Shown in pieces: positions 374 through 61,374 of a stretch of 64,000 nucleotides of DNA. A program made the translations under genes and the position numbers. Numbering within the stretch: position 1 is the first letter of the stretch; each line of letters begins with the position of its first letter. The notes beneath the pieces are model-generated. The model was given only the letters and a program-made list of their open reading frames with translations. It was not told the DNA's origin and ran no database searches. This DNA is from Takakia lepidozioides. Lineage: Eukaryota > Plantae > Bryophyta. The stretch covers positions 47,306,001 to 47,370,000 of the forward strand of contig CM060734.1 of the NCBI GenBank assembly GCA_030704615.1, in the 5' to 3' direction.

Positions 374-3300
374 CTATGTTACTATTGTAATCAGCCAGGG
401 GATGTCCAGAATCCGCCCTTGGACATCCGAGCACGTCTCCATGAGGGTTTGGATGAAAGCAGGGCTCCGGGTCCGGCTGTACCGCCACGGTTTGCCTGTC
501 TTTGTGTCCTTCGGCATACTGGAGTGGGGCACATAGTTGTAGAGGACATCGTAGGTTACAGGGTCCACAACGGCATCAACAAGACGACCGTCGTTGCGGA
601 ATTTGAACGTAGACCCTCTCTTCACAAAGCAATATGCCTCAAACACCAATGTCTGCACATCCAACAAAGAAGGGATCAACTCCAGGGTCTACTTAACATA
701 CACCACAATATGAAGTGAATGCAATAGATTGATAACTTACACTTTGGCCCTCTGTTCGCAACCCCTGTGTACTGATGCAGAACCATTTTCTGAGGAGGAC
801 CGGGGTGACACTTTTCGGTGTCCACCTTGCCACCGCATTCTCTGTGGTCTTCCCTCTCGTGGCAAGGACAACCACACATCCACCGTCATCCAGAAGCATC
901 CCCGCCAGCCCAAACCCGGCTTTCCAGTAGTCCTCAGTAAACCTGTTCCAGGTGGGCACACCATCCAGGCCCTCCAGCAGCTCCCCATCTGGAATGTCGA
1001 GGAGAATCATGTTGCAAGCTCTCTCCACCTCAACCCCCCTCCCCCCCCCCCCCCGAGTGCTCTTGCAATTCGTGCTCACAGCCGTGAAGAATTCCATCAT
1101 GGCTTCAAAACCAGGGGTGTCTTTAGGCTCTGTACCGCCAGCCCTCTTCTTGGCTTTCCCCTTCTGCTCCGCCAGAGACTTGCTGTGTGCCACCTTCTTC
1201 ACAGCGAGAGCGTCAAGGAAGCTCTCATTGACGCATTGGATGATGGTTGGAGGTTCTAGCTTTGGCCTATGCGTAAACGTCACCGCCGTGTAGGCTCGCC
1301 CTCAAATGCCAACTTCTTGGCAGAGCCAGTCCCACTCCGAACTGACTTGGGAACCCGGACGACCGGTGACTGGGTAGGAGCAATAGCAGTCGCAGGACCT
1401 TGAACAAAGTCGTCGTCCGAGTCACTCTCTTGGGTCCCCTCCTGCGCCTCCTCCGATGCCCCGATGGTTTTCTTCTTTTTGGGTGTTACTGCACTCACCT
1501 GTTTCCTTGTCCTTTTCCTTTGGCCTTTACTCTTCTCATGCAATTTCTCCTGAATTCCTGCCTGAGCAAGCTCTGCCGCTTTCCTGGAGTTCACAAGCGC
1601 TTTTGCCTCTTTTGCACCCAACGGAGGCAGCGGAGCCCGGTTTCGTCGGAATTCAGCATCCAGCTTCAATTGAAACTCGGATGGGTCGAGCGAGCTGGGC
1701 GGAAGGTCCACATACCAAGGGCAATCACGCGAATGTTCCAGATGCCACTCCTTCACAATATCGTCAGTGTACATGGAGTCAGCCCCAGGGTTCCTCCATG
1801 CCAGGAAGAATGGTGGCTCGAAAGACAGATGACCTTTCTCCAAAATGGAGAACTTGCAGTACCTGCATTCATGAAAAACACAATGAGGTCCCTGAAATGC
1901 ATATTCGGCACCATTTTCCCAGGTTGGGGCGGATGTGAGTGGGCCTAGAAATGGAAAAATGGCGCCGAATTTCGGTTTTCGGTGACTGCCACCCTAGGGA
2001 CTTAGCCATCTTGGGAGCCCTGAACTGGAAATTCGGCGCCATTTTTCCCGGTTTGGCCCGAAGATGGCTAAGTCCCAGAACCGCAATAGGGCCTAGAACT
2101 GGAAAAATGGCGCCGAATTTCTAGTTCAGGGCCAGCCACCCTAGGGACTTAGCCCGAAAATGGCCAAGTCCCTGAACGGCAATAGGGCCTAGAACTGGAA
2201 AATGGCGCCGAATTTCCAGTTCGGGGCCAGCCACCCTAGGGACTTAGCCCGAAAATGGCCAAGTCCCTGAACGGCAATAGGGCCTAGAACTGGAAAATGG
2301 CGCCGAATTTCCAGTTCGGGGCCAGCCACCCTAGGGACTTAGCCCGAAAATGGCCAAGTCCCTGAACGGCAATAGGGCCTAGAACTGGAAAATGGCGCCG
2401 AATTTCCAGTTCGGGGCCAGCCACCCTAGGGACTTAGCCCGAAAATGGCCAAGTCCCTGAACGGCAATAGGGCCTAGAACTGGAAAATGGCGCCGAATTT
2501 CCAGTTCGGGGCCAGCCACCCTAGGGACTTAGCCCGAAAATGGCCAAGTCCCTGAACGGCAATAGGGCCTAGAACTGGAAAATGGCGCCGAATTTCCAGT
2601 TCGGGGCCAGCCACCCTAGGGACTTAGCCCGAAAATGGCCAAGTCCCTGAACGGCAATAGGGCCTGGAACTGGAAAATGACGCCGAATTTCCAGTTCAGG
2701 GCCAGCCACCCTAGGGACTTAGCCATTTTCGGAGCCCTGACTGGAAATTCGGCGCCATTTTCCCTAACACCACATGAGGCTTCTAACATCCTGAAATGCA
2801 AGGACTTGAAAGAAAGACAGCGCGTATGTACCTGTACAGAAGGCGCATTGCTGCTTTGTCCGCATTCGGCTGGTCGGTGAACTCGTGGCTCCGGCGAGCA
2901 TCTGCTATCTCCCGAAAGAATAGGTTGGTTTTGTAGAGCAGAAAGTACCTCGTCACATAGTCACGTAGGCTCTCTGCTGCAGGAGATATCTCCATCTTGA
3001 ACTGATGTGCTTGTGTGTCCAGCTGCTCTTGCGCATTCGTCGTCACCTGTGGAGATTCTCCATCAGATCGCTTTCCTGAAAAAATACAATGAATCCACCC
3101 CCTACTAGAGTAGAAGCCCCAAACGAAGCGTGGGGAAGTACCTGAAACCACCATGTCATGCGGTTCATCCACATGTCGAATGTGGGGTCAGAGAGTTTGT
3201 CCGGTTTGGGGAAGCTCCACATGTCCCTGGTACTTTGGGAACCATTCCAGATTTGGAGCCACCGGGTCTGTCCAACCACCCAACATATTCGTAAGCGCCA

Positions 3301-5471
3301 AACACCACAAAAAGGAGTTGTTGCCACCACAATTTGGTTAAGAATGTATCACCTTTTCTGTTGCATCCACACAGGATGTGGCTAGACGATGGAGCTTCTC
3401 CAATGTCATCGTGGGCTTCAGAGCGCGAGAGTAGTGCTTCCCCACCTCCACCAGAAAGTCGGCACCAAGGGCGGGATCAGCTATGGCCACGTACTTTACC
3501 ATCCGCGACTTGTACTTTATGCGGGCCCTCACCTCCGCAGCTTTGACATACGATTCGAGTTCCGGGAAGGTTGGATTCTTCTCCTCTGACTCCATGTAGA
3601 ACCTCCGCGCATGTGCCAAATCCTGCTGTATTTTCGTCTGTCAAGAATGCGTACATAAGATTAGAGATCTTGCTCAACACAATTTCTTCTATTGGGGGAG
3701 GAGACACAGATTAGCTCAACAAAACTGTCAGGAGCTTTACCCGAAATATGTAGTCCACCATGGCGTCGACGCTCAGCCTATACCAGGTTCTGTCTGCCTT
3801 TGCCTCCGACTTGCGCAGGAGGTCGGCACTGAGGGAATTGGCAAACTCTTGCACCCCCTGCTTCCCGACATCCTTCACTCGGAAGAGCATATGGGACAAG
3901 TTGGTGGCAATGAAGGCATTCTCAGTCACCCTGCAGTGCCACATTTCCATCAAACAATACTGAAATGGGAATTTTCATCATATATGAGGATTCGCAATGA
4001 AATGACTTCCAAATTCAAAGTCCAAAAGCGAGAGGGGTTGTAGCTTACGAGTTGATGTCGGCCATTGCAGCTTTGAGAAGACTGCGATCTTTGGGCCCCG
4101 CAACCTTCAGCACAACACAATCCACGGCAAAATGCCAATCGAGGTCTTGGGGTGGGCTTGGGCAATGTGCTCCATCCATGCCAGGAGGCGATGATTGCCG
4201 TCCCACACGTAGAACATCTTACCGGACAAGTGCTGGAAAAGAGGATCACTAGCAATCGATCTCTCGAACTCCTCATTTCGCGTTTGCCAATGGGGACCCC
4301 ATTTGTCCACCTCATCGGAAGTGTGGGCACGGGAAGCTCCGTGGTCGTTCTCAATGGAAACGTAAAACGCGGCAGACCACATTCGATATCCATCCCGGAA
4401 AGAGAATTTCAGCTTGTCGATATCGCCTGGGAGGGCAGGTCTCACCACCTGCAATGACACCAAGCGGCAAAGGGGAATTCGAAGCTTGGCTGGGTACACC
4501 ATGCCCCCCAGCACCCTGCCAATGTTGTTGTGGGTTGCCTCCAACATCTTGGCAGCGGCCAACTTCATATCCGCCTCAGACATGACGTCTGCTGCAGAGG
4601 GGTTTTCCGGCAGCCCACTAGGACCGCCAAATCCAGCCTGTATGCTCCGGGTTTGGGGCTTGGGGATGTCCGGGAGGATGTCATCCTGGTCAGAAAGCTC
4701 CCTGTCGTCCTCCTCAACAGGGTCAGCCGCCTGCGAAACCACCTCCAGCACTCTCCCCGTCTCTACTGCCCTCTCCCTGGCTTCACCTCAAACTTGCACA
4801 ATCCGTGCTCTTTCTGGTGTTCTTTCCTCTCCTCCACTCTCCACCGTATGGGTAATTGCGGGGGCTGCTCTTGCCCGCGATGGTCTAACCGGTGTGTTAC
4901 TGCCTCTCTGTGGTGTCTTGGAGGGATCCACCGTCTCTGTGCGTCCCTCGCTTACATTGGCATCTGTCATTTGGGCACCCTTGGCCTCTTCAGTGGCCTT
5001 TTCTCTTTCCTCCTGGCTAGCATTTTGTCTCGTCTGTTCTTTTGCCCTCTCTTTTGCCCTCTCACGGGCTTTCTGTTTCTTACTAGGGCTAGCAGCAGGG
5101 GAGCCCTCCAGGACGACCACCTTTGATTGAGGCGAATTGACACCCTCGCGCGCACTGCTCACTCCCCCCTCCGCAGCCCGTGACGGCTCTCTCGCCGGGG
5201 ATTGCATGTGCTTAGCTTTCTTCTTTTTCTTTGCGTGGGCGGGCCCTACTGCATGTGCATGAACAACCTCCATTGCCGGATCTGCTGTCCTCATGTCCTC
5301 ACGCCCTTCACCTGCCATGCCGCCTGCACCAACCTCCCCAATGCCTATTCTGTCGTACTCTCGTTGCAAGTCCTCCCGTCCACCAACAAAAGGTTGAAGT
5401 TTGCCCTCTCGCCCCAAGTTGGGCGATTCAAACATGCGATGAGTTGGAGCTGTGGATGATACCACCAGCAT
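374..5471 (-). pseudogene. Spliced gene: low-complexity N-terminus + ParB/Srx-like domain + helical middle + beta-class N6A/N4C DNA methyltransferase-like domain (disrupted)
   Basis: VWDGNHRLLAW, with DGNHR at 4188-4202. CNMILLDIPDG, with DIPD at 987-998 (motif IV-like). LAGMLLDDGGCVVV, and RSPAFIQTLMETCSDVQGRILD (motifs X/I-like). GT..AG introns at about 4048-3931, 3741-3690, 2830-1864 and 738-654. In-frame TGA at 4788 and several frameshifts. Confidence 0.6.
1940..2762. repeat. 95-bp tandem array (about 6 near-identical units plus degenerate flanks) inside a predicted intron
   Basis: TGGCCAAGTC recurs at 2161, 2256, 2351, 2446, 2541 and 2636. Each unit carries AACTGGAAAATGGCGCCGAATTTCCAGTT and AGGGACTTAGCC-n7-GGCCAAGTCCCT. 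Confidence 0.95.
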
Positions 5472-6219: not shown

Positions 6220-7860
6220 GGATGAAAATCGACGGAACTCGGCCCGGAATTTCCAACGTAGAGGTAATTCGGAGCGCTGCAGGATGGAAATCCGGCACCG
6301 GATTTCCATCCTGCAGGTAATTCGGAGCGCAGCAGGATGGAAATTCAGCGCCGAATTTCCATCCTGCAAGGTAGGGCGGCGCGTGAAATTTCCCTCACGC
6401 AGGTAATTCGGTAGCGGATGGATGCAAATCCGGCGCCGGATTTCCATCCGCGCAGGTAGGGCGGCGCGCCAAATTTCCCTGACGCAGGTAATTCAGAAGC
6501 GGATGGATGGAAATCGGGCGCCAGATTTCCATCCGCGCAAGTAGGGCGGCGCGCGAAATTTCCCTCAAGCAGGTAATTCGGAGGCGGATGGATGGAAATC
6601 CGGCGCCGGATTTCCATCCGCAAGGTTGGGCGGAGAGCGGATGGATGGAGATCCGGCGCCGAATTTCCATCCAGCAGGTAAGTCGGATCGCTGGCGGATG
6701 GATATTCGGCGCCGAATTTCCATTCGCCAGGAATTTCGAAACGCTGAATTACCTTCCTGCAGGTAATTCTGAGCGTGTCCGATTGATTTTTCGGATTTTC
6801 CTTGGAATCCTTCACTGCTAGAGGCAAATCGGAACAGCCTTGGACGGAAATTCGGCGCCGTTTTTCCATTCTGGGAGGTTTCTGCGACTTCCTTTGAGGG
6901 GGCCCCGATGGAAATTCGGCGCCGAATTTCCATCCGGGGGATGGTCTCTGTCGGAGAGGTGCCGGCCTCTCCGCCGCTCTGTTGGATATTCGGTGCAATA
7001 TGACGGCCAGGTGCCGGCCTCTCCCCCCTCCCCGACTGCATGGGAACGGCCCCGGATTGAAATTCGGCGCCGTTTTTTCCATCTGGGGAGGTTTTTATGT
7101 CGACCAGTTTTCGGTCTGACCCCCCGACACGACTTCCTTTGGGGGGGGGCCGGATGGAAATTCGGCGCCGAATCTCCATCCAGGGGATGTTCTCTGTCGC
7201 ACACGCGCCGGCCTCTGCGCCCGAGGCGACTTCATCCGGGCGTCCCCTGCTGGATATTCGGTGCCGAATTTCCGTCCGGGGGTTGAAATGTGACGGCCAC
7301 ATGTCGGCCTTTCCCCCCTCCCCGACTGCATCCGAACCGCCCCGGATGGAAATTCGGCGCCGTTTTTCCATCTGGGGATGTTTTTATGCCGGCCAGTTTT
7401 CGGCCTGACCCCCCGACACGACTTCCTTTGGGGGGGCCCGGATGGAAATTCGGCGCCGAATCTTCATCCAGGGGATGTTCTCTGTCGCACACGCGCCGGC
7501 CTCTACGCCCGAGGCGACTTCATCCGGGCTTCCCTTGTTGTATATTCGGTGCCGAATTTCCGTCCGGGGGTTGTAATGTGAGGGCCAAATGGCGGCCTTT
7601 CCCCCGAGCCGACTGCATCCGAAAGGCCTCGGATGGAAATTCGGCGCCGTTTTTCCATCCGCGTAGGTTTTTATGTCGGCCAGTTTTCGGCCTGACCCCC
7701 CGACAGGACTTCCTTTGGGGGGGATCCGAATGGAAATTCGGCGCTGAATTTCCGTCCGGGGGATGTTCTCTGTCGGACAGGTGCCGACATCTCTGCCCCA
7801 GACGACTTCATCCGTGTGGCCCCTGTTGGATATTGGGTGCCGAATTTCCATTCGGGGGTA
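6220..7860. repeat. Complex array of GGAAATTCGGCGCCGAATTTCC-type palindromes; about 288-bp higher-order units from about 6840
   Basis: Perfect 28-bp palindrome GATGGAAATTCGGCGCCGAATTTCCATC at 6907-6934 and many variants. Unit marker ...TCGGCGCCGTTTTTCCAT near 6850, 7060, 7350 and 7640. Confidence 0.9.
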
Positions 7861-8571
7861 ATAATGTGACGGCACGGTGCCGGCTTCTCCCCTTCAGCCG
7901 TCATCATCCGGACGGCCCCCCACTTTCTGACTGCATACCGTTGGCAGTTATTGCGCAAAGACCAGGGGCCGCATTCCGGAGACAAGGTTCATTAACACTC
8001 TGACTGTGGATTTTTTAGATAGTTGGCTCCCTGGATTTGGTCAGGCTTCGTCGCTCGGACAAATCGGCACCGCATTCCTTCCCATCGCTGCATCCCCCTT
8101 CTACCAGGGAGCTTCCCCGCATGCCATCCTGGTAGTCTTGTGTGCACATCTCCCATGGCGGAAAACTGAAGCGCTACAGTGTACTGCCCTCCTCACGAGC
8201 ATAGAGCTTCATTTCCGTGCAGAGGGGACATCTGCCGGGTGATGGAGAAATATTTGTGCGTTCGATACCACCTGAAACCGGGGTCGGTTTTTTTGGAGGA
8301 GGAAAGGAAGGACTCAAACGGCCTTGTTGTCTACTCTTCCTCTTCCAATTTCTTCTCTCTATTTTCATCCTCCAAGTTCTGCCCTTGGGTTTCTTCTTCA
8401 TTCATGTAACTCAACTGCAATGATGTTGGAGAGTCTGAACTCTCCGTTGGCTCTGCCACTTCTTCTCCTCCTTCTTCACCTTCCGCTTCAGAAACTGGAG
8501 ATCCTGCTTTTGGTGTTCTATGCCAACTCTTATCAAAGATTTCTGTCAAATCTTTTATCCAGGGATGTACC

Positions 8572-9989: not shown

Positions 9990-10225
9990 GTGACAGCTGT
10001 GTCAAGCTGTGACTGGCTGTGTGAAACTGTGACCGGCTGTGACCGGCTGTGTCGGGCTGTGACTGGCTGTGCGACTGTGTTGGGCTGTGTCGGGCTGTGT
10101 CAGGCTGTGACTGGCTGTGTGGCTGTGACGGGCTGTGTTGACTGTGACTGGCTGTGTTGGCTGTGTCGGGCTGTGTTGGACTGTGACGGCTGTGACGGGC
10201 TGTGATGGACTGTGTTGGGCTGTGT
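9990..10225. repeat. GGCTGTG(AC/TC)-type minisatellite
   Basis: Degenerate ~10-bp units (GGCTGTGACT, GGCTGTGTCG) repeated about 20 times. Confidence 0.9.
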
Positions 10226-12751: not shown

Positions 12752-15634
12752 ATGTCGGAGGAAGAATATCCTCAACCGCAACCTGGGTGGACCATTCACC
12801 AAGCCCTACTAAAGGAGATATATCTTTACCAGGGACTGGGATCACCATGCCACCTAGTGGAACTCCAAGATTATATGCTTAGGCAACTCTTTGGAGGTAT
12901 AGCAACTGAACATGATGTACCTGAAAGATTCGACAACCTGAGCATTGGAAAGCTTTTGAGTCATTTGCCTCATGACTCGGATGGTTACTTGGATGGATTT
13001 AAGGCCCCCACGAGCTGGAAGACAATGATGGATCTGTATATTGAACTGGGGGCGGTAGAGACAAACAGATGGCGGATGTGTGTGGGAACTGAAGCCTATC
13101 CACATGAGGTTGAAGTCATTAGGCCTAGCACCGAAGATGCCTATGAAACTGGGCATGTGCAACAGTGTGATTGTGACCTGCCAAGAAATAGACGGGAATG
13201 CACAAATTGTGTGGAGAGATGTAGGCGATGTATGATGATGAGGAAAGAGATGGTGGCTTTTGATTATTTACCGTTTGCTCCTCAATTTGCACTTCTTATG
13301 CGGTCAAGAAGCCATTCGTATGCGATGCTGGCCATGTGGAGAGCTCGAGATCAGTGGTTGGGTAAGGGTGTTGGGGACGTGCCTACCACCATAAAGGACT
13401 TTTGGGATGGAGTGAAGTTGCGTGCCTATCAGCAATTTTGGGATCCGGAGTCACAATGGGAACTACCTGTCCTTTGCAGGAATCCACAATGTGGGCAGAG
13501 CTACAAAGCATTTCCAGGAAGGTGCGAGGTATTGGAGGGTGCATGGGATCCACATAGAATGCTATATGATTTTGAATGTACGCGTTGTAGACAGCCAATC
13601 CTCGCTCGCAGAGTAATGGTGAAATGAGATCCGAGAAATATTGCAATCATGGCCCACTGGGATGGGTTCTCATCCACTCGACACACGAATCGTGGGTTGT
13701 AGAGGTGAAAATCTTGAATGTAGACAAAGATAGTGATTTAGGTCTCCTTCCTATTCTTTTCATCCCTTTGGACTCTATTCACGACGGACTTTTGGATAGA
13801 GTCAAAAATTCTAAGATTGCTTTCTTGAAGCCGTTAATTGAGGAATTGCAAGGTTCCTTCTTAGATGGATTTGAAGCACCTATTTCATACCCTCCTCATC
13901 TAATCTCTCCTCATCTACCAGATGAGGAGATGACCACCACTTTGAGGGTGATCCTCATGCTATTTGCAGGGGACCACCCTGCCCAATGTAGCATTGGGAT
14001 GGTCAAACAATCAGGCAAATCTGGATGTAGACGATGTATCATGCAATCGACAGCCCGTGATGGGAGGTATGTTTACGATGGGAACAAGAGACAATTACTA
14101 AATCCACCACCAAGACGCACATCTGAAGCATTGTACACCAGTGTGCGAGCATGGAAGCGTGCATCTTCAGAAGAAGAGAAACGTCAAATTCTGCAAAAGG
14201 GGGGCATATCGGGAGAGTCTGCTCTTTGGACTTTATACCATTTATATGGGTTTGATATAAGCCAGGACTTGACTTACGATGTAATGCATATTGCCAGTTT
14301 GAACTTGTTCAAGTCTTTCATATCAAAATTATTTCTGGAGCTTCAAGGTGATGCCAATGCTCTTCAGGATGTGGCCAAAGTGTGTAAGGCAGTAAGCGCA
14401 GCCTTATGAGCTTAGAAATGGTCGGTGGCCTTACAAGCCTGTGGATAATCACAATTCATTCTTGGGTGAGGAACACCAGCATTTTATTCAATGGATGTTA
14501 CCAAGCATTCTAAATGTTCTCCAGGGGCGGATCAGCGAGGAGCGGAGAGTTCTTGGACTCATCATGATTGACATTGCCCACTTCTTGTTCAATTATTGCA
14601 GGAGATGGGGTTGGACATCAGAGGTCCTTAACATTGTTCGGACCTTATTTGCCACTTGGAGAGTCTGCTCAGAGGAATTGGATGGTCCCAATGGAGCTCC
14701 CTTAGAGCATGTGGCCAGTGCAGGGCACATCCTTGAGGATGTGGTACGATTTGGGCCTCATGAATTGTACTGGTGTTTCCCATACGAGAGAGAGATTACT
14801 CGCTACCATCGAATCAATACAAATAGAAAACAAATGGAAGTTTCATTCATCAAGTACTATTCCCGCCGTTTGTTCACACAAGTTCAAGGTCATGTCTTCT
14901 TGGACAGAGATGGTATGCAGGGAGCCCAAAGGGATATTCTTGCAATTCATGCAGTGTTTATGTTCCCGGAAGGTGCTTTTTTCGAGGTTGGCAGAGATAT
15001 TGCTTGTCAAGCATGGCATTTGAAGTGCGTGTTGAAGGTCACTTCTATCCAAAAAGCGCTTGAGTTATGGAAAAGGCTCAAAGCCTTGGAAGGCATGACA
15101 TGCCTGCAATTGATGAGAAGGAAAGGAATACTACTTGGTAGGAAGAATGACAAGGACCTCCTCGTAAATATGGATGAACATACACACACGTATCTACAAG
15201 AGCACTTGATGCAGACTGGAGTCTTAGGCGCCTGGAATGTGGGATCTTTTCACACAACCATCAAACTGTACAATTCAGTGTTGCTCAGAGGAATTCTCTA
15301 CAAGTGTGAGGACAATGTGGTTGTTCAGGAGAATGTGGAGCATTCGACACCATACAAAGCAAAGGTCAAAAGCATATTCTCCTATGATTTTGGAGAAGAG
15401 ATTCATTTGTTTTTCGCTGCTGATTACTATCTGCATTTGCAAGATGCCCGAGGCCATATGATGGTTGACATGGTTGACAGGGGTACTGGAATGCACGTGA
15501 TAGTGACCAACTGCATGGTCCAATTTGACCACACATGCATTCGACCATTGATTTTCATACAACATAAGTTCATGCTAATTCCTTCCATCCATGGACCAAA
15601 TCACAGTGTGGCTTATGAAATGCAAGACAAATAG
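12752..15634 (+). pseudogene. EnSpm/CACTA-type (TnpD/Tnp2-like) DDE transposase with C-terminal BAH-like segment
   Basis: DPRNIAIMAHWDGF reads on after the TGA at 13625. Also FAGDHPAQ...GCRRC, YDVMHIASLNL and FGPHELYWCFPYERE. Stop at 13625, frameshift near 13680, and a break near 14407. Confidence 0.85.
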
Positions 15635-19199: not shown

Positions 19200-20270
19200 G
19201 TAGCATTGAGTGCTAACAACCTCCCGTAAATTGGTTCTCGAACATATTTTCATCATAATGAGCGCCGCCATTTATTCATATCGCTATCTTCCCAACGGCA
19301 AAGGCCTCCGACGTCATGTCCCTGGGGGAAGGGGGGGGGGGGGGGAGGGGGGTGGCATTCGCATTGAAAACTGATGCAATATCTTTTTCCACCCACCATC
19401 TTTTTGCGAGTTCTCGGTCCAGCTTGTCTTGGTTTTCAAACTAGTACGGCGAGGCTTTGCGTATGCCTAATGGGGTGGCTAAGCCCCAATCATACACCCC
19501 AATCTTGATCTCCTTGGTGTCATCTGGAAAATGCAACAAGATGTTGTCGAGGGACAAGTCGTTGTGCAGGAAACCGTTCTTGTGGACAACATCCATGATG
19601 CACACCAGTGCCCATGCAAGTTTACTGCGCATTTTTTGGAAACGAAGCAAGCGATCGAATTCCTGGAACTTCCCCTCTGTTCCAAAATCACCCCGTTGTT
19701 CGAATCGTTGCCCCATTTTCTATCAAGGTTCATCATGTCGCGTATTGTCCCCCCATTCCACCAGCGAGTGTAACCCTCTACCTCACGTGCATTCACAGCA
19801 AAATATGAGATGACACCCGGATGTTGGAACTTCACTGCCAACACGCCGCATTAACTCAGCTTTGGCGGAGGGCACTCGACCCTCGGTTGCTCTACCCTTC
19901 CATGTCTTCAGTAGCTACCTCAAATTCCACGTGGAGTCTTTTGCTTTGCTTTGGATCCACCGATTGAACTTCGGTTTGTCCCTGTCCGCCGTCCACTTAG
20001 CCCCCGCCAAAACGTTTGTCATTTTCCTCTCCATATTTTGCTAAAAAATCTGAAACCCCTCCCATCCATGCCTGACATAAGCACTCTCCAGCCTCATCAT
20101 GTCCATACCCTTGAAATAATCCACTACCACTTCTTTCACTCTATCCAAGGCATACGGTCTTGGATAGTCTGACTTGTTGATCTGGCTATCCCGCTCATGG
20201 GCACGTTTTCTCTTCTTCCGACCCCCAGACGACCCCGCCCCAGAACTGGAATTCACAACCCCTGACATTG
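19200..20270 (-). pseudogene. Divergent protein kinase (frameshifted), transposon cargo
   Basis: Across frames: Gly-rich GGG*VDGGQG, QHPGVISY, LHNDLSLDNILL, YDWGLAT, RWWV and SEAFAVGKIA. N-terminal NLS-like RKKRKR. Confidence 0.75.
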
Positions 20271-35430: not shown

Positions 35431-38400
35431 TCTTACATTCCTCTTGTCTTATTCCAAGAATGGCCAAACACCGCCATTTACTTTATGTACAGATCCTTCA
35501 AGTCACAATGATTCTTGACTCAACAGGAACTATAAACCAATTCTAGAATTTGCACATGGTACTGGGACACACCCAGTCCTCCCAACCGCCACACCATGCA
35601 TCACTTCTGTATCGTCTCTCTTCCCTCTAGACACTGTTCACCATGGCCGTACATCTTCCCACTCTATACAGCCAACATCTACGAGCTCTCTCTTCTAAGA
35701 AGAAAAGAAAAACCAGGAGAAGAGAGTCCCTAATCTCCTCCCTGTACACTTCTCAGCCATCGTCATTTGAGCTTTTAGTCTTGATCAACGGAAGCTTGCC
35801 ACACACCACCCCACTGTTCAACGTGACTTCCCCATCACCTCCCCCATACAGCCGTCGACGATTGCTGAACTGTTCAACATCCTGCCAAGAGGTTTCGAGT
35901 TCACAGGTTATATTACCTCCCTCCTATAAGGGAGTATTGTCCTCAATATTGAACTGGGGAAAATTCTTGCGAAGATCATCTTCTCTCTCCCATGTAGATT
36001 CTTCTATAGGGTAATTCTTCCACTTAATCAAGAACTCATTCCAAGAACGAGATCTCAAGGTTTTCACCTCTACCTTAAGAATCTCTTCTGGGTTCTGCCA
36101 CAATTTCTCCTTCAGTTGTGACCTTCGGCAAGTCTAGGAGAACATGGTTGGGATCTGAAACATATTTCCTTAAGAGGCTCACATGAAATACGTCATGTAT
36201 CTTCCACCTAACAGACAGTTCCAGCTGGTAGGCGACTTTGCCAATCTTTTTGATAATCTTGAAAGGTCCACAGTACCTTGGGGAAAGCTTATAACACTTT
36301 CCCAGGCTCAACTGGCTCTTCTTAGGGATCACTTTAAAAAATACTTGATCTCCAATCTCAAATTCTCTAAAAGACCTTTTCTGATCAGCATAGGTCTTTG
36401 CCCTTTCTTGAGCTCTCCTCATGCTATCTTTCATTAAGTCCATCATCTTGTTGCATCCTTGCTATCATCTGATTGACACTTTCGACCTTAGTATTTGAAA
36501 CATGCCAAGATGCTAGTGTCAAGCAATCTTGCCCGTAAACAGCTTCAAATGGGCTTACCCCAATAGCTGTATGCATGTTCTTATTATAGGCAAACTCACA
36601 AAAATGCAAATATTGTTCCCAAGAGCTTTGCCTTTGCCCCACATACATTCGGAGCATGTCTTCTAAGGTTCTATTTGTCCTCTCTATCTGAGCATCAGAT
36701 TTTGGGTGGTAAGCACTGCTAAAACATAATCTGGTATTCAAAGCTTTGAACAAAGCAGTCCAAAATCCACTCGTAAACTTCGAATCCCTGTCAGACACAA
36801 TTTCTCTTGGCAAGCCATGCAGTCTGTATATCTCTTTTACAAAGAGATTAGCTGTGTCTATAGCAGTTGCACTCATCTTTGTGGGTATGAAATGCGCTTG
36901 TTTTGACAAGCGATCAACTACCAGATGGCATCATGTCCATTTCTTGTCTTAGGCAATGAGACAATGAAATCCATACTTATAGACTCCCACTTTGCCCTGG
37001 GCACATTCAGAGGTTGCAAATGTCCAGGAGTCTTGATCTGTTCTGTCTTGGTTACCTGACAAGGGTAACACCTTTCAACATATTCTCGTATGTTCTTCTT
37101 CATCCCAGCTATCCCAGGCCAGAAAAATTGTTTCCTAATTGCAAGATATGTTTTCTGAAAGCCAGGATGGCCTGCAATGGGTATGTTATGACAGTCGTAC
37201 ATAATCTTTAGTCTATAGTCTGCAACCTGAGGGATGCATAGACGCCCATCACAGTACAATAACCCATCCTTCAACAGATAAGCAAGATACTTGCCAATTT
37301 CATCAGGAGTCTTAACCCCACGAGACAGGCTTTCAAACGGGCCAGCGAAATATGCGTCTTTAGCATACTGACCTCTTATCTCTTCTATCACAGTGCTTCT
37401 TATCACTGAAATAGCAGTTGCCCACTTTTCTTCTGGACAATGCATCTGCCCACGTTCTCTTTCCCTTTCACATAATGCAATTCAAAGAAGAACTGCTGGA
37501 GGAACTCTACCCAACGACATTGTCTGCGATTGAGGTTGGGTTGTGTAGCTAGATACTTCAGGCTTTCATGGTCTGTCTCAATCTTAAATTCCCTTCCCAG
37601 CAGATAATGCCGCCAAACCTTTAAGGCATGTATGATGGCTAGCAATTCTTTTTCATGCACTGGGTGGTTCAGCTCTGCTGGGCTTAGTTTTCTCGACTCA
37701 TAAGCTATTACCTGTCCGTGTTGCATTAACACAGCTCCTATGGCCAGGTCACTCGCATCTGTGCAAAGTACTAGACCACTTGTCTTGTAATCCATTAATT
37801 TCAAGACAGGAGCATGTGTTAACATATCTTTAAGCTTTTCAAAGCTCTCATTACAATCCTCGGTCCAGGTAATCGCTCCTAAGCCTTTCAGCAGGCTAGT
37901 GAGAGGGGCTGCAATCTTGGAGAATGCCTTTATAAACCTTCTATAAAAGCTTGCAAGTCCTAAGAATGCTCTCACATCTGTTCTATCCTTCGGGACTGGC
38001 CATTCTGCCACAGTCTTTACCTTCTTGGGATCAACTAAAATGCCATCTTTTGACACTGTAAATCCCAAGTATTCCATCTGGGAAACAAAAAACTCACACT
38101 TGCTCTTCTTAGCATAGAGTTTATTCTCTCTCAAAATCTCAAGGACACTTTTCAAGTGTTCTATGTGTTCTTCTTCAGACTTGGAATAGATTAAAATGTC
38201 ATCCATGAAGACTAACACAAATTTCCCCAGATACTTTCTGAATAAGGTATTCATTAAGCACATGAAAGTGGCTGGTGTATTTGTGAGTCCAAAAGACATC
38301 ACTGTATATTCATAGTGGCTAAATCTAGTTCTGAAGGCCGTCTTAAACGTGTCCGAGTCTTTGACACGGATCTGATGGTATCCACTTCGTAGGTCTATCT

Positions 38401-41187
38401 TTGAAAATACTTGCGCATCATGCAAGTAATCAAATAAGTCATCTATCCTAGGAAGTGGAAACTTGTTCTTTACGGTTAGTTTATTCAACCATCTGTAGTC
38501 CGCACACAACCTTAAAGTCTCATCTTTCTTTTTCTTGAACAACACTGGTGCTCCCCAGGGAGACTTGCTAGGCTTGATATAACCTTTATCTAGCAAATCA
38601 GCCAGCTGTCTCTCCAATTCTTCATTCTCCACCAAAGAATGCCTATAAGGAATCCTAGAGGCAGGAACTGCTTCAGGAACCAACTCAATGGCATGATCTA
38701 CATCCCTTCCAGGAGGTAGTCCAGGCAGATCACTGGGAAACACATCTGAAAATTCAGATAGGACCTTATTTGCTCTGTTGAGATTGTTCAACTCCACTTC
38801 AATGCCTTCGTCATCATTCTTTTGAATGCTTACAAAGAACAGCTGACCGGCTGTCTTCCGTATGCATCACTTCATTTGAAGGGCTGACCACAAAGGAACA
38901 TTGGGTAGGGCTCTCGTACCTGTAAGCTTGAATCGCTTACCACCAGGCAACACCCCCTCCACTGAACAATTTCGGCATGCCACTTGAGCGTCCACAGCTG
39001 CCAGCCACTGCATTCCTAAGATGATGTCGTACCTTGCGCCATCCCAGACTTCAAAATCTACCTCTGTGGTGATCCCTTGCATTGTGACAGTGACCTCCAA
39101 ACTTCTTTTGTTGGTAGATCCTGCATCTCCATTGGGCAATAGAATGGTACTGGTGCCAACTTCCTTCAACTGCAGCTTGCACTTGTTTGCAAAATTTTGA
39201 GACAAGAAGTTATGGCTGCTTCCTGGGTCAATCAAAACAGTCGTGGTTTCTCTTCCCACCTGACCATTTAATCGTATGACTGTGGGATCATGGTCTATCT
39301 CTTTACCCATCACAGTCGTTGAGATCCTCAGTTGTTTACCTTTGCTCGTCCCAGGTGCATCCACATCCATTTTATCCCCAACCTCTTGCACAATCACAGC
39401 TGCAGCTGCGCGTTGTACGCGTTTGGGACACTCAAACGCCCGATGGCCTTTCTCATGACAGATAAAACACTGACCCAACCGTTGGTGTTCTTCCTGTTCC
39501 TTCTCTGATAGGTGTTTGGTCGCTAAGGCTCCAAACTTCTGATTACCCCTAGGCTCAGTCTTTGTTGTCTTCTTATTGAACCTTTTCCAGTTCTTTCTTT
39601 TCTGACCTCCACCAAAAGGGAATGACTTTGGCTTGAAATCCCTATCAGTAGGTGCACTTGCACCCAGATGTGCTCTGTGCTGGCTCTCAAAATTGATAGC
39701 TAGTCTATATGCATCAGCCTCTGTCTTCGGCTCATATGCCTAAACCAAAAATCTGATTGCTTTGTCTAGCCCAGTCAGGAAGAAATCCACCCTGTCAGAC
39801 TCCTTCAAGGAATAGAAGTATGAAGCGTGTTCGTCAAACTTCACCTTGTAGTCTGCCACACTCATTCTTCCCTGGCTAAGTTCCATCAAACCCATTTTCA
39901 TCCTGTGCGCATAGTCCTCTGGCAGGTACTGTTATTTGAAGACCCGTTTGAACTTAGCCCATGTGGTAATCAGGTCCACTCTCCCTTCCAGACCCGGCTT
40001 CTCTTTCATTCTAATCCACCATTCTTTAGATTTGCCTCTCATTTGCAATGAGGCTGTGCGGATCTTATCTGCATCCGTATAGTCCTCACTGAAGAACTCT
40101 TCCAGAGTCTCCAGAAAAGACAGCACCTCAGTGCAAGGTACATTTGGGCGACCGTGGAATTCAGGAAGATGTGTCATCTTCCTAATTTCCTTGTCAACCG
40201 TTCTTCTCTTAGAATCCCTTGCCATCATGGAGCGGCTATCCTGTGAGGAGGCACCTGAGGCAGAACCACCTCTAGCCTCTTTTCTTTTTGTCCTAGTTCT
40301 TACATGCAGATCATTATGGGGAGCACTTACTGGTTGGTCTACTGCTTGCTGGTCGGGTGGCACCACCGGTGGAGTTGGATTTCCTGTAGGTCTCTTGCCA
40401 ACAGCGGCTATGCCCTCCTTCACTCCACTAGCCATCGCCTCGCGAATGACCTGAGCTAGATCTCCCGCTTTCATAATGATAAGTTCTTCTGGTACAACAA
40501 TTTCTTGTGTTTTCTCAACTGCAGCCTGTGTATGGCTTGTCTCTCCTTCCATCGACTCTTGAGATGTGCTACAGCTACCTTTGGAGATAATATTCCACTG
40601 AAGCAACGAGCTTCCAGAGCCGAATGTCAATTGGCTCATAAACCACAATTCCCAAAAAGGTCGAAATATGCTCTGATACCAAGATCTTACATTCCTCTTG
40701 TCTTATTCCAAGAATGGCCAAACACCGCCATTTACTTTATGTACAGATCCTTCAAGTCACAATGATTCTTGACTCAACAAGAACTATAAACCAATTCTAG
40801 AATTTGCACATGGTACCGGGACACACTCAGTCCTCCCAACCGCCACACCATGCATCACTTATGTATCATCTCTCTTCCCTACTCGTAGACACTATTCACC
40901 ATGGCCGTAGATCTTCCCACTCTATACAGCCAACATCTACGAGCTCTCTCTTCTAAGAAGAAAAGAAAAACCAGGAGAAGAGAGTCCCTAATCTCCTCCC
41001 TGTACACTTCTCAGCCATCGTCATTTGAGCTTTTAGTCTTGATCAACAGAAGCTTGCCACCACATCGCCACCACCTGCTGTTCCACGTGACTTCCCCATC
41101 ACCTCTCCCAGACAGCCGTAGACGATTGCTGAACCGTTCAACATCCTGCCAAGCCTGTCGTAGGTTCGAGTTCACAGGGACGTTATA
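35431..41187 (-). mobile_element. Full-length Ty3/gypsy (chromovirus-type) LTR retrotransposon with frameshifts
   Basis: LTRs at 35431-~35911 and 40685-41187. 5-bp TSD GCTAC. PBS TGGTATCAGAGC (40670-40681) and PPT AGGAGGGAGG. CFICHEKGHRAFEC, LIDPGSSHNF, RT FMDD, RNase H TDAS, integrase SMDF/SDRD, GPF motif. Confidence 0.95.
37403..38797 (-). CDS. Gypsy reverse transcriptase-RNase H
   Basis: [38 protein letters not shown]. Confidence 0.9.
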
Positions 41188-56999: not shown

Positions 57000-59900
57000 T
57001 GTCCCCTCACGTCAAAACACTAGAGCTTCGCGTTGCTCCGCACTACTAGCGACGACTTTTGATAACATGCTCGCTTCGCGAACAAAGATGCGCGTAGCGC
57101 CCCACGTGACGAAAAATTTCGGCAAGACAAAAATGCAAAAGTACCAAAGGTATTCAACCCCTGTTTCTTGGAGCTAGAGCCTTCATGAGAGCTACGAAGA
57201 AAGACGCGACATTTGCACTGTATGCGACTCCGATCAAAACCACAACAGACCAAGGTACTTCGACATTACCCACTCAATATCAAAACTTCAATGATGTCTT
57301 CGAGAAAAAAAATGCAGACATGTTGCCAGAACATCGACCTTATGATTGTGCAATTGAGTTGCAAGAAGGAGCTCAACCACCATTCGGTCCGATTTACAAT
57401 TTATCTCAGACGGAGTTGGCTGCTTTACGCGAATACATTGATGAAAATTTGTCAAAGAATTTCATTCGACATTCGAAATCACCTGCAGGAGCATCTATCT
57501 TATTTGTGAAGAAGAAAGACGGATCGTTACGCATGTGTGTAGACTATCGTGGGCTCAACAAAGTCACTATATAAAATCGTTATCTACTACCGCTGATTTT
57601 AGGACTCCTCGAACAACTTGGACGAGCAATTTTTTTCACAAAGATCGACTTGAGATAAGCTTACAACCTTGTACGAATAAAAGAAGGAGACGAATGGAAG
57701 ACAACTTTTCGCACAAGGTACGGACATTTCGAATACAGTGTTATGCCTTTCGGTCTTACAAATGCTCCAGCAATCTTTCAACGCATGATGAATGACATCT
57801 TTCGAGAATTTTTAGATGACTTTGTAGTCATCTATTTGGACGACGTTTTGATATTTTCACAGAATGAAGAAGAACGTGGTTGCCATGTACGCCTTGTCCT
57901 TGAAAATTGAGGGAAAAATGATTATATGCCAAATTGAAAAAATGTCTTTTCCACCAATCTGAAGTCGAATTTTTGGGCTACATTATTTCCGACAAATAAG
58001 TCTTTATGGATCAGAAGAAAATACAAACCATCATCGAGTGGATTAAACCAACTTCGGTCCGAGATGTACAATGTTTTCTAGGATTTGCAAATTTATATAG
58101 AATATTCATCAAGGACTACTCCAAAATTGCTGCACCATTGACACAACTCACAGGAAAGGACAAATTTGTATGGGACGAGAAGACTGACCAAGCATTTAAA
58201 AGGCTGAAGCAGACATTTACAACGGCTCCAATACTAGTACATGCAGACCCATCTGAACCATTCTTTTTGGAAGCAGTACATCGGACTTTGCACTTGGCGC
58301 GGTATTTTCTCAATATGGTACAGATGGTCGACTTCACCCTGTTGATTTTCGTTCTCGAAAATTTTCCGCTACGGAGATCAATTATGAAATCCATGACAAA
58401 GAACTTCTAGCGATTATTGATGTTTTTGAGGAGTGGCGTCATCTATTGGAGGGAGCTAAACATCATATCACAGTCTATACTGATCACAAAACCTCGAGTA
58501 TTTTATGAGTGCTCGTGTTTTGAATCGACGTCAAGCGAGATGGAGTATGTCACTAGCAAGGTTTGATTTTGTTATTACCTACCGTCCGGGACATCTTCAA
58601 GGAAAACCAGATGCTCTTTCTCAACGATTGTATCTTGCGCCAAAAGAAGGGGATGCAGCTTTTGACCAATAGAAATCAATCATCTTGAAACCAACAAATC
58701 TCCAATTGAATATGATATCCATGTCCACCTATGACGATGTAGAGGACATAAAGGAGATTCAAGAAGCACTGAAGAGCGACAAATTTGCTACGACACTACG
58801 AAATCAACTAAATCGACCTCGAGACAACCCACATGTTACAAACGACTTCGAATTCAAAGATGACTTACTTTATTTCAAGGGACTTCTCTATGTATCTCCA
58901 GGACCTACACGACTTCGAATTCTTCAAACATGTCATGATCTTCCGGCTGCAGGACATTTCGGCTTCAACAAAACAATAGAATTGATATCCAGGGACTACT
59001 GGTGGCCGCAGATGTGGAAACTCGTGAAAGAATTTATAAAATCTTGCGACACATGTGCTAGAGCGAAGGGACCACGACATCGACCTTATGGCCTTCTTCA
59101 ACCATTACCCATTCCCAAGGGTCCATGGTCATCCGTGTCTATGGACTTTATTACGGACCTTCCAATTTTCAAGACCACCGATTCAATCCTTGTTATTGTA
59201 GATCGTTTTACGAAGATGACACATTTCATTCCATGTAATAAGACGGTTACCGGCGAGGAAACTGCAAGACTCTTCCTCAATAATATGTACCACATTCATG
59301 GACTCCCGAAGGACATCGTATCTGATCGAGGACCACAGTTCATATCAAATTTTTGGAGGGGACTATTTCACATATTGGATACTAAGATCAACCTCTCTAC
59401 AGCTAATCATCCACAAACTGATGGTCAAACCGAACGTGTAAACCAGATTTTGGAGCAGTATTTTTACTGTACGATAAATTATCACCAAGATAATTGGACG
59501 GACCTGCTGTCATTGGCTGAGTTTGCCTACACCAACACTATACATTCTTCGACCAAGCAAACTCCATTTTTCTCCAATTATGGTCATCATCATCGAGCAA
59601 ACCCTTTCCACATGAAGATTGTTGGAAGCCCTGCTGCAGAAAACTTTGCTATTCATCTCGCTATGATTCACAAGGAGCTTACATTCCACCTCGCAGAAGC
59701 TCAAAAACAATACGATGAGTATGCAGATCAACGTCGCCAACTCCAACCCCAGTTCAAAGTCGGAGATCATGTGTGGCTTCTTCAACGGGACATACAAACC
59801 TCGCGATCATCAAGGAAGTTAGATTATCAACGCATGGGACCATTCAAAATTATTCGACAAATAAATCCGGTTAGTTTTCGGCTTGAACTCCCACGAAGTA

Positions 59901-61374
59901 TGCGCATCCATCCAGTCTTTCATGTTTCATTATTGGAGTTGTATCATCCATCGAATATTCCAGGGAGAGTCTCCGTACCACCTCCACCAATCGAAGTCAA
60001 TCAGGAAATTGAGTATGAAGTCGACAAAGTCCTAGACTCTCGCATCAAGTATAAACGTCTTGAGTATTTCGTACATTGAAAAGGCTACGACATCAGCGAA
60101 CGAACGTGGGAACCTTCATCCAACCTCGCCAATGCATCTGACAAAGTCCAAGAGTTTCATCAACGATATCCAGCTAAGCCCCGAGCTACATGTCAATAAG
60201 ACGTCACAACGATGATGTCAGCCAAGTTAGCTTAAAAGTGTACCTGATACACGCTAAGGAGGGAAAAGCACCACACATAAGTATATATAGCTACACTTCC
60301 AGCACTTCCAACACTCTTGCATCTTGTATTGGCAGTATGGAGTCACAGGAACCAGATACATTGGAGTTGTCGCTTACCTAGCTACCACATCAGCCGTTCC
60401 AAACATCACACCGACGCTCTCGAGACGATGGGCCACCAGTACGACGCATACTTCCTCGTCTGGACCCCGTACGACGGCATGTGAAGCCTACTCGAAGTCT
60501 GATAATTCTGTTGGAGGTTGAGGCTTCGGACCCAGAGGGCAACGAAATCATGTTTGAAGGCAGCTTCGAAAATCAGAATGCTCAAATCACTGCGTGGTCC
60601 CAAGTTCAAGGAGTTGGACACTATCGATGGTTGCATGGACCTATAAATCATTTGAGTCAAGAATGAAAAACCGAATACTTGGCAAGAACCATTCGCCGGA
60701 TTTTGGATTTTCTCCAACTCTAAGCAAGTCCAAGATGAGGGGGGGTGATGTCACGGACATAGCCCAGAGGAACTAACCAGGAGTAAATATCAGAAGTTAC
60801 CAAGTTACCAAGTTACCAAAAATTGCCATGATTTACCGTAATTTATCATGATCTACCATGATTTACCATTACTTACCAAGTTACCGAGAGTTTATCAAAT
60901 TACCAAGAGTAACTTGAGAAACTGCTCATGAAGCTTCTTTTGAAGGAAACTTCTCCATCAAGATACCTCTTTTGTTTAAAGAAGCTTTTCCATCAAGAAA
61001 CCTTTGTTTAATCTTGGAAACTTCTCCAGCAAGAAACCTCCATATGGGAAGCTTCTTAGGGAAGCTTTTTAGTAGTCAGTATATATAAGAGGCAAGACTA
61101 GACATTCTTCAGTCTCGCCAACACCAGTTCAAGCTACTTTTGTTTCCAGTTTCCAGTACTCTAGCCCAGTTTCTGGTACTCCAGTCCAGCTTTCCAGCAT
61201 TCCAGTATTCAAATCGTGTTCCAATATCTTGTACTCTTGCTCATTGTTATAAAGATCGTCTTGATTCCTATTTACTCATCGTGCATATGGCCACGCCAAC
61301 CTTGACTTCTTGTCTAGTCTTGTACCACTAGTCTGATCTCTTATTTGTGTTCAGTCATGTTCTCGTCCTTGACA
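57000..61374 (+). mobile_element. Tcn1-like chromovirus pol (RT-RH-INT-chromodomain) plus 3' LTR, degenerate
   Basis: [45 protein letters not shown], and the chromodomain EYEVDKVLDSR..LEYFVH*KGY..TWEP. PPT GAGGGGGGGTGA. LTR TGTCACGGAC..GTCCTTGACA at 60749-61374. Confidence 0.9.

Follow-up and report, generated by a model that had tools for sequence, protein, structure and literature searches.

Does the spliced gene on the minus strand at positions 374-5471 of a 64,000-nt stretch of the Takakia lepidozioides genome (contig CM060734.1 of GenBank assembly GCA_030704615.1; the whole stretch is called the window here) encode a working DNA methyltransferase of the host, or does it belong to a mobile element? 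An initial annotation had described it as a fusion of a ParB/Srx-like domain with a beta-class amino-methyltransferase-like domain and had likened it to the 4mC methyltransferases of bdelloid rotifers and Marchantia. We consider it fairly probable that the gene is one multi-exon copy of an undescribed eukaryotic family that is borne by repeats; it would serve a mobile element as accessory gene, stem from a phage-type ParB-methylase fusion and encode a pseudo-enzyme, not a host 4mC/6mA methylase. A description of this family in land plants was not found in the literature, the coverage of which was incomplete.

The open reading frame (ORF) pieces of the minus strand are present as listed in the ORF list, and they join, as had been proposed, into one long protein (Table 1). 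Direct reading of the DNA and comparison with relatives revealed seven introns, each with GT...AG borders, and splicing leads to one stop-free frame of 687 codons downstream of about position 4150, while 211 further open codons lie upstream, between an in-frame TGA and a frameshift in a CCCC run. Only this frameshift is firmly required; several had been assumed, but the change of frame between pieces p7 and p8 near 1283 is explicable by a GTGAGT...AG intron. In the sequence as given the frameshift is genuine: the stretch that is out of frame, 4048-4158, can be aligned with residues 204-237 of the related proteins P0001-P0003, directly after the DGNHR region, better than 300 of 300 shuffled sequences. 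The positions that had been quoted for the motifs are correct (Table 1; ILLDIPDG extends over 984-1007), whereas the location of DGNHR "near the N-terminus" is not, because the motif lies about 190 codons past the in-frame TGA, or about 420 codons into the protein if the 227-codon open stretch further upstream is counted. That stretch, for which a homologue was found in none of the relatives, might represent a 5' leader or the remnant of an earlier N-terminal extension. A run of G12-A-G6 is present at 1031-1049 of the minus strand within exon 7 (read as GGGGRG), and together with the CCCC run it prompts one to ask whether the assembly contains homopolymer errors.

At the 3' end, ILDIP is followed by WLIT, and the window copy has neither a Gly nor a glycine loop at this point, in agreement with the earlier remark that the GxG of motif I is not visible. 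A hidden Markov model (HMM) built from the last exon of the relatives has no match in positions 1-373, and the last exon must therefore be either past the window edge or lost. A frame-B stretch at 333-416 (LADYNSN...VLALG) was considered as the missing motif I and helix and was rejected, because it lacks similarity to the last exons of the relatives. The copy is probably decaying, given its frameshift and the absence of both the glycine loop and, as far as the window extends, the last exon.

Homologues of the ParB-like exon exist among metagenome proteins (47-53% identity), and a pattern scan of metagenome contigs yielded 51 related loci. In L001, L007, L026, L034, L035, L045 and L064 the pieces known from the window follow 3' of the ParB-like match in the same order, so that order and spacing are kept in at least seven loci, and homologues in the same order occur in more than ten independent loci, which excludes that the pieces were joined by chance. 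Two kinds of relatives connect the parts. In L007 (473-2507) the region from the ParB part through exon 6 is colinear with the window in abutting ORFs, without recognisable introns, and the exons that flank intron 5 in the window are only about 80-130 bp apart; judged from their coordinates, the L007 ORFs are read as being interrupted by in-frame stops and one frameshift. In P0012 and the fern protein P0113 (MCO5554666.1 of Adiantum nelumboides, annotated with 611 aa), linker and methylase-like part follow one another within a single protein. The overlapping pieces of L007, P0012 and P0113 indicate one gene, not two. The copy in L007 could have arisen as a retro-copy, or it could represent an ancestral form without introns. 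The break between exons 7 and 8, read as an intron, is at the identical place in all relatives examined, which supports the long residence in eukaryotes that had been deduced from the introns, and the fern relative fits the assignment to a plant.

For the C-terminal domain, an alignment of five virtually spliced family members (the window, L064, the fern, L001 and a moss-type sequence) was compared by hhalign with an alignment of ten genuine PF01555 enzymes, namely E. coli YhdJ and nine phage enzymes. The probability was 97.4% (P = 1e-11, score 81.9), and with relaxed mact the alignment spanned 202 columns in the correct, permuted motif order IV-V-VI-VIII-TRD-X-I-II-III. Controls remained far lower (shuffled columns at most 19.4, reversed 17.3, ParB alignment 13.9), and the score was still 80.4 after removal of the window sequence. 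The two halves also matched the reference alignment separately, the exon-7 family with P = 1.4e-4 and motif IV in register, and the exon-8 family with P = 0.018 at motif X-I. Textbook C-terminal motifs are present in relatives, i.e., GRHIFGFEGDPEMY in L064, HFFGIEADPLIY in L001 and GAGTG...GRICLVIDND in the fern, and by eye the motifs of the family are nearest to the phage type "DLPYG...NCMGSGTT". Other searches gave less: P0112, an ORF of L064 that continues across the intron, matched PF01555 at E = 0.062 (profile positions 147-194) and was the best relative, with 13.7 bits under a cut-off of 26.7; hmmscan against Pfam, read up to E = 10, gave nothing meaningful for any ORF piece of the window or any member of alignments A1-A3; when PDB sequences were searched with HMMs of alignments A1-A5, no ParB or methylase match was returned; and a search of a representative library with exon 7 gave only short fragments and the spurious repeat protein P0006, with no full-length or bacterial close relative. 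On the strength of the profile comparisons, the family is a genuine, very divergent offshoot of the beta-class (PF01555-type) amino-methyltransferases, as had been suggested.

The residues on which activity depends have not been retained to the same extent. Motif IV of the window reads D-I-P-D, and the relatives have D-[LIVMC]-P-x-[G/N], with conserved Asp and Pro but with D, S, E, N or T as the fourth residue. The canonical forms (D/N/S)-P-P-(Y/F/W/H) and D-L-P-Y are absent, and the search for motif IV in relatives, which might have restored the aromatic residue, brought up a single case, the F of P0014 (DLPFG). It is true that the GAT codon of the window is one base from TAT, but it is not a recent slip, because the aromatic residue is missing in the relatives save this one. 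Catalysis by enzymes of this class requires the aromatic residue, which stacks on the flipped base. The glycine loop of motif I differs from lineage to lineage, with GAGTG in the fern, CGMG in moss-type sequences, CNTG together with GRHIFGFEGD in L064, and TSST together with HFFGIEAD in L001; the loop for S-adenosylmethionine (SAM) is thus degenerate in several lineages, and in the window neither the motif I loop nor a GR-x-x-I-G-x-E motif is found. From the lost aromatic residue and the variable glycine loop we infer a pseudo-enzyme; judged by its motifs, the methylase-derived domain is unlikely to be active as a DNA methylase.

The N-terminal domain was approached via structure. An AlphaFold model of the relative P0001, which is 53% identical to the domain of the window, was calculated from a 28-sequence alignment; its core has a pLDDT of 80-95, and the helices past the core are of low confidence. 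In a Foldseek comparison with the PDB, the top 23 matches were all Noc, Srx, KorB, PadC or ParB (E 0.03-0.6, probability 0.21-0.93, mostly at least 0.75 among the top 14), and the viral library BFVD gave matches to ParB, Spo0J, ParB-like nuclease, sulfiredoxin and DndB with probabilities of 0.9-1.0, as well as to a phage "DNA methylase"; SerK was also among the top matches in PDB and BFVD. The motif W-D-G-N-H-R (Y-V-W-D-G-N-H-R) is invariant in six of six aligned sequences, DGNHR has the form of the ParB/Srx phosphate-binding motif (GxxR, DGxHR or GCHR after a beta-strand), and hhalign placed it on the I-D-G-F-H-R of YbdM/IbrB-type ParB nucleases, in the right register. Pfam gave no assignment for the domain (DndB at E = 0.26 in one family member), and an HMM search of PDB sequences with the alignment of the ParB-like family gave no ParB match. 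Because the structural matches are not accompanied by a significant sequence or profile match, the ParB/Srx assignment of the initial annotation is supported at the level of the fold only; at that level, the modelled structure supports a ParB/Srx alpha-beta fold.

The DNA next to the gene contains candidate sites for such a domain. Some 750 bp 5' of the gene lie tandem arrays in which each unit carries a palindrome, GGATGGAAATTCGGCGCCGAATTTCCATCC. Its 20-nt core is present 20 times in the whole window, and shuffled sequences contain none; 17 copies are within the arrays, the remaining three are degenerate and located inside intron 5 (1954-2121), so that all 20 adjoin the gene or sit inside it. 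A half-site of the tandem array in intron 5 is related to the upstream palindrome. L064, the protein of which is 31-45% identical, has an 84-bp x 5.6 array at 1651-2120, about 1.1 kb upstream of its own gene copy; this array, in which palindrome cores were recognised by eye (CATCCGCGG-TG-CCGCGGATG), has the layout seen in the window and a different sequence. The arrays of the window are a candidate cis site of the ParB-like domain.

The distribution of the family points to mobility. A common DNA block of at least 13 kb, a lower bound since the homology extends to the edges of the loci, is shared by the moss-type, AT-rich metagenome contigs L003, L011, L014, L015, L029, L034, L035 and L045, which have different flanks; the gene thus rides on a dispersed repeat, and many copies of the family carry stops or frameshifts. 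The gene is not a single host gene; its family is multi-copy, largely decayed and repeat-borne. The contig names Ga01162xx and Ga0209611 presumably denote peat-moss-associated metagenomes. L003 also contains a fragment of a retroviral-type integrase at 927-1811.

About 7 kb from the gene, the window contains a transposase remnant (Table 1) with a Cys-rich lead-in and a D-H-P-A...C-R-R-C stretch; in the relatives, no homologous transposase was found next to the gene within 10 kb. The GC content is 52-57% in the first 8 kb of the window, which contain the gene and the arrays, versus 41-47% elsewhere. Further away, a Ty3/gypsy-type zinc knuckle, protease, reverse transcriptase, RNase H and integrase zinc-binding domain are encoded at 36424-40648 of the minus strand, and a separate Ty3/gypsy-type integrase with a Tf2-type SH3 domain at 58685-60079 of the plus strand. 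A degenerate 10/38/48-bp tandem array built on GCTGTGTCGG / GCTGTGAC occupies 9990-10225, and a short ORF at 19441-19716 of the minus strand has the protein-kinase-like catalytic-loop motif F-L-H-N-D-L-S-L-D-N-I-L-L. A scan of the whole window with Rfam gave no match. The methylase of a DIRS-type retroelement and bacterial contamination were considered and dismissed, since 374-5471 contains no reverse transcriptase and the gene has introns and lies in a eukaryotic repeat context.

Table 1. Positions in the window of the gene parts, in order of transcription, and of the neighbouring arrays and transposase remnant
Feature	Position	Strand	Basis or remark
Upstream open stretch, 227 codons, Lys/Glu/Arg-rich	4788-5471	-	same frame as the ParB-like exon, separated by a single TGA (4788-4790)
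Exon 1a: low-complexity lead-in, then ParB/Srx-like core (PLCR...VRP...FYVWDGNHRLLAW; DGNHR at 4188-4202)	4153-4787	-	47-53% identity to P0001-P0005
One-base frameshift in CCCC run	4149-4152	-	real mutation or homopolymer assembly error
Exon 1b: end of ParB/Srx-like domain (DLDWHF...AAMADIN), shifted frame	4049-4148	-	alignment to P0001-P0003
Intron 1, 118 bp	4048-3931	-	GT...AG
Exon 2 (TENAF...WYRLS...YIFR)	3741-3930	-	relatives and spliced frame
Intron 2, 103 bp	3740-3638	-	GT...AG
Exon 3, conserved linker part (VAIADP...EKLHRLA)	3353-3637	-	relatives and spliced frame
Intron 3, 85 bp	3352-3268	-	GT...AG
Exon 4, linker part (WLQIWNG...)	3142-3267	-	relatives and spliced frame
Intron 4, 95 bp	3141-3047	-	GT...AG
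Exon 5, linker part (...QPNADKAAMRLLYR)	2832-3046	-	by eye, matches the N-terminal part of fern P0113
Intron 5, 969 bp, with 95-bp x 7 tandem array (2056-2724)	1863-2831	-	GT...AG
Exon 6 (YCKFSILEKG...CPWYVDLP...)	1499-1862	-	P0012 and fern P0113: segment and methylase-like part in one protein
Intron 6, tentative, 239 bp (GTGAGT...AAAG)	1260-1498	-	alternative: frameshift near 1283-1301
Exon 7: first half of methyltransferase-derived domain; motif IV D-I-P-D-G (984-998), conserved W-N, LLDDGGCVVV (867-896)	741-1259	-	hhalign
Intron 7, 88 bp	740-653	-	GT...AG
Exon 8: TRD-like stretch, motif X to start of motif I (SPAFIQTLMETCSDVQGRILDIP, SPAFIQ...ILDIP, 398-466); 3' end uncertain	392-652	-	45% identity to L064, E = 4e-20
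Arrays of tandem repeats (53, 85, 96 and 288 bp in period) whose units each contain a 30-36 bp palindrome, GGATGGAAATTCGGC|GCCGAATTTCCATCC	6228-7919		core count versus shuffles
CACTA/EnSpm-KDZ-type transposase remnant, three consecutive ORFs, divergent from the gene	12752-15634, possibly from 11782	+	Plavaka E = 0.0096 and Transposase_21 E = 0.016, same ORF

Could the gene nevertheless encode an active, or recently active, N4C/N6A methyltransferase of the host with a ParB-like targeting domain, comparable to bdelloid N4CMT and Marchantia DN4MT1? The homology to PF01555 enzymes over the whole domain would be in line with this idea, as would the conserved Asp and Pro of motif IV, the fern copy, which retains the G-A-G-T-G loop and a GR...D motif, and the one relative with an aromatic residue; but the residue at the fourth place of motif IV is D, S, E, N or T in every lineage save one, the family is multi-copy and mostly decayed, the window copy combines a frameshift with the loss of glycine loop and last exon, and Marchantia DN4MT1 retains TSPPY, so that this explanation is highly improbable. 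Equally little speaks for two neighbouring genes, one ParB-like and one methylase-like, that are not fused. The fern annotation of 611 aa does start after the ParB part, the longest of the introns (969 bp), which contains a minisatellite, does lie between linker exons, and the fusion model was drawn up from genomic sequence; against this stand the spliced frame, which is open over all junctions, the colinearity from ParB through exon 6 in L007 without recognisable introns, the bridging of linker and methylase part by P0012 and P0113, and the order and spacing kept in at least seven loci, which leave the two-gene model a very slim chance.

Somewhat more can be said for the gene as a passenger of the adjacent CACTA/KDZ-type transposon of which 12752-15634 is the remnant, and thus as the land-plant counterpart of a red-algal Plavaka cassette. 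Gene and transposase ORFs are divergent, with the palindrome arrays between them, the GC content of the first 8 kb is set apart from the remainder, and the logic is that of the Plavaka elements of Bostrychia, in which the ParB-like PAG3 lies beside tandem inverted repeats and PAG2 contains PF01555. However, the transposase matches are sub-threshold (E about 0.01), a homologous transposase is missing within 10 kb of the gene in every relative, the left side of the element is cut by the window, which makes its ends undefinable, and the likeness to PAG2 and PAG3 is one of description. This connection is possible, though rather unlikely.

The preferred reading, a repeat-borne family with a degenerate methylase domain, also has to be weighed against several observations that do not favour it. 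Since the frameshift at about 4150 falls within a homopolymer, it may reflect an error of the assembly, and the copy might then be intact. The gene model was derived purely from genomic sequence and the loss of activity was read from motifs, and the fern gene model begins after the ParB part. Among ORFs of at least 140 aa, no transposase is recognisable inside the moss-type repeat, so that mobility is deduced from copy number only. With respect to the domains, neither of the two was assigned in the window copy by HMMER or Pfam; the top Foldseek E-values for the N-terminal domain are weak (0.009-0.1), and its hhalign comparison with IbrB/YbdM was not significant (P = 0.13-0.41); the spliced window sequence alone scored 16.3 against the methylase profile, which is not significant; and an AlphaFold model of the exon-7 half-domain gave MTA1c as top Foldseek match at a probability of 0.25, followed by generic alpha/beta folds.

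Fusions of a ParB-CTPase fold with PF01555 (N6_N4_Mtase) are frequent and enriched in phages and prophages (PMC12704722). As this combination is common there, the most likely origin of the family is a fusion gene that was captured from a phage or bacterium and gained its introns later. Both share a ParB-like N-terminal part, a beta-class methylase C-terminal part and a tie to mobile DNA, and the methylase part of the family is like the phage subtype "D-L-P-Y-G ... N-C-M-G-S-G-T-T ... GR-FIG-E". In contrast to the phage fusions, the present family is eukaryotic, has seven introns and an extra linker of about 450 residues, lacks the aromatic residue of motif IV, has a degenerate glycine loop, and both of its domains remain under the Pfam thresholds.

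Similar modules have been described for Plavaka transposons of Bostrychia moritziana, which carry PAG2 (PF01555 and SET) and PAG3 (ParB-like and a putative 2OG oxygenase), with tandem inverted repeats beside PAG3 (10.1101/2025.02.11.637652). The PAGs, which are carried by giant DNA transposons, share with the family the ParB-like and PF01555-type modules, inverted-repeat arrays by the ParB-like gene, and, to judge from sub-threshold matches in the window, a KDZ/CACTA-type transposase nearby. They differ in that the present family has both modules in one protein, in which no SET or 2OG domain was seen, and a far more degenerate methylase domain, whereas PAG2 matches PF01555 directly; in addition, the relatives found here are from a fern and metagenome contigs, not from red algae, and the comparison is by description.

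Bdelloid N4CMT and Marchantia DN4MT1 have been described as amino-methyltransferases of prokaryotic origin that are active single- or few-copy host genes with a canonical SPPY-type motif IV (for N4CMT, PMC8885841). In Marchantia DN4MT1 the motif is TSPPY. Both, which we take to belong to the PF01555 class, resemble the present family in prokaryotic amino-methyltransferase ancestry and residence in eukaryotic genomes, but the latter is multi-copy and decayed and lacks the aromatic residue; the likeness to a working host 4mC methylase, at which the initial annotation had hinted, is not supported, because it does not extend to the SPPY-type motif, here without its aromatic residue, or to the SAM loop, here degenerate or absent. 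Dam methylases of the chlorophyte type that carry a ParB-type HTH at their N terminus have been traced to phage ParB-terminase loci (Iyer et al. 2016, PMC4738411). They too join a eukaryotic methylase to a ParB-derived module, but their methylase is of group 2 (EcoKI/TaqI-like) and the module is the ParB HTH, whereas here a ParB/Srx nucleotide-binding fold is combined with a group-1, beta-class PF01555-type domain. The present family thus appears as phage architecture with red-algal logic, set apart by the single intron-rich protein, the long linker and the lost catalytic residues.

In the preferred reading the protein has three parts: a ParB/Srx-fold domain, in which W-D-G-N-H-R is invariant, a conserved linker without known fold that comprises about 450 residues, and a C-terminal domain of PF01555 descent that would now serve as a DNA- or SAM-binding pseudo-enzyme. 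We propose that the ParB-like domain recognises the adjoining palindrome arrays, so that the protein would act on its own element by tethering, marking or anti-silencing. To our knowledge, it is rare that a eukaryotic transposon carries accessory genes for action on its own DNA or chromatin, the known cases being the VANDAL anti-silencing factors, the fungal KDZ-TET/JBP elements and the red-algal PAGs. It should be noted that a convincing order of methylase motifs is not sufficient for calling a 4mC/6mA enzyme in a eukaryote, as the loss of the catalytic residues shows here. A speculative extension, which we judge to be unlikely as it stands, is that land-plant-type genomes (ferns and probably mosses) carry large selfish repeats in which a ParB-like protein with its own "parS-like" palindrome array, fused to a methylase-derived pseudo-enzyme, forms a module of self-recognition by which the element has its own DNA tethered, marked or shielded, i.e., a eukaryotic re-use of the phage ParB-methylase system in parallel to the accessory genes of red-algal Plavaka elements. 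The ParB-like domain and the palindrome are a directly testable pair of protein and site, and the occurrence of a ParB-like domain, palindrome arrays and a methylase-derived fusion in fern- and moss-type sequences would extend the theme of transposon accessory genes to land plants.

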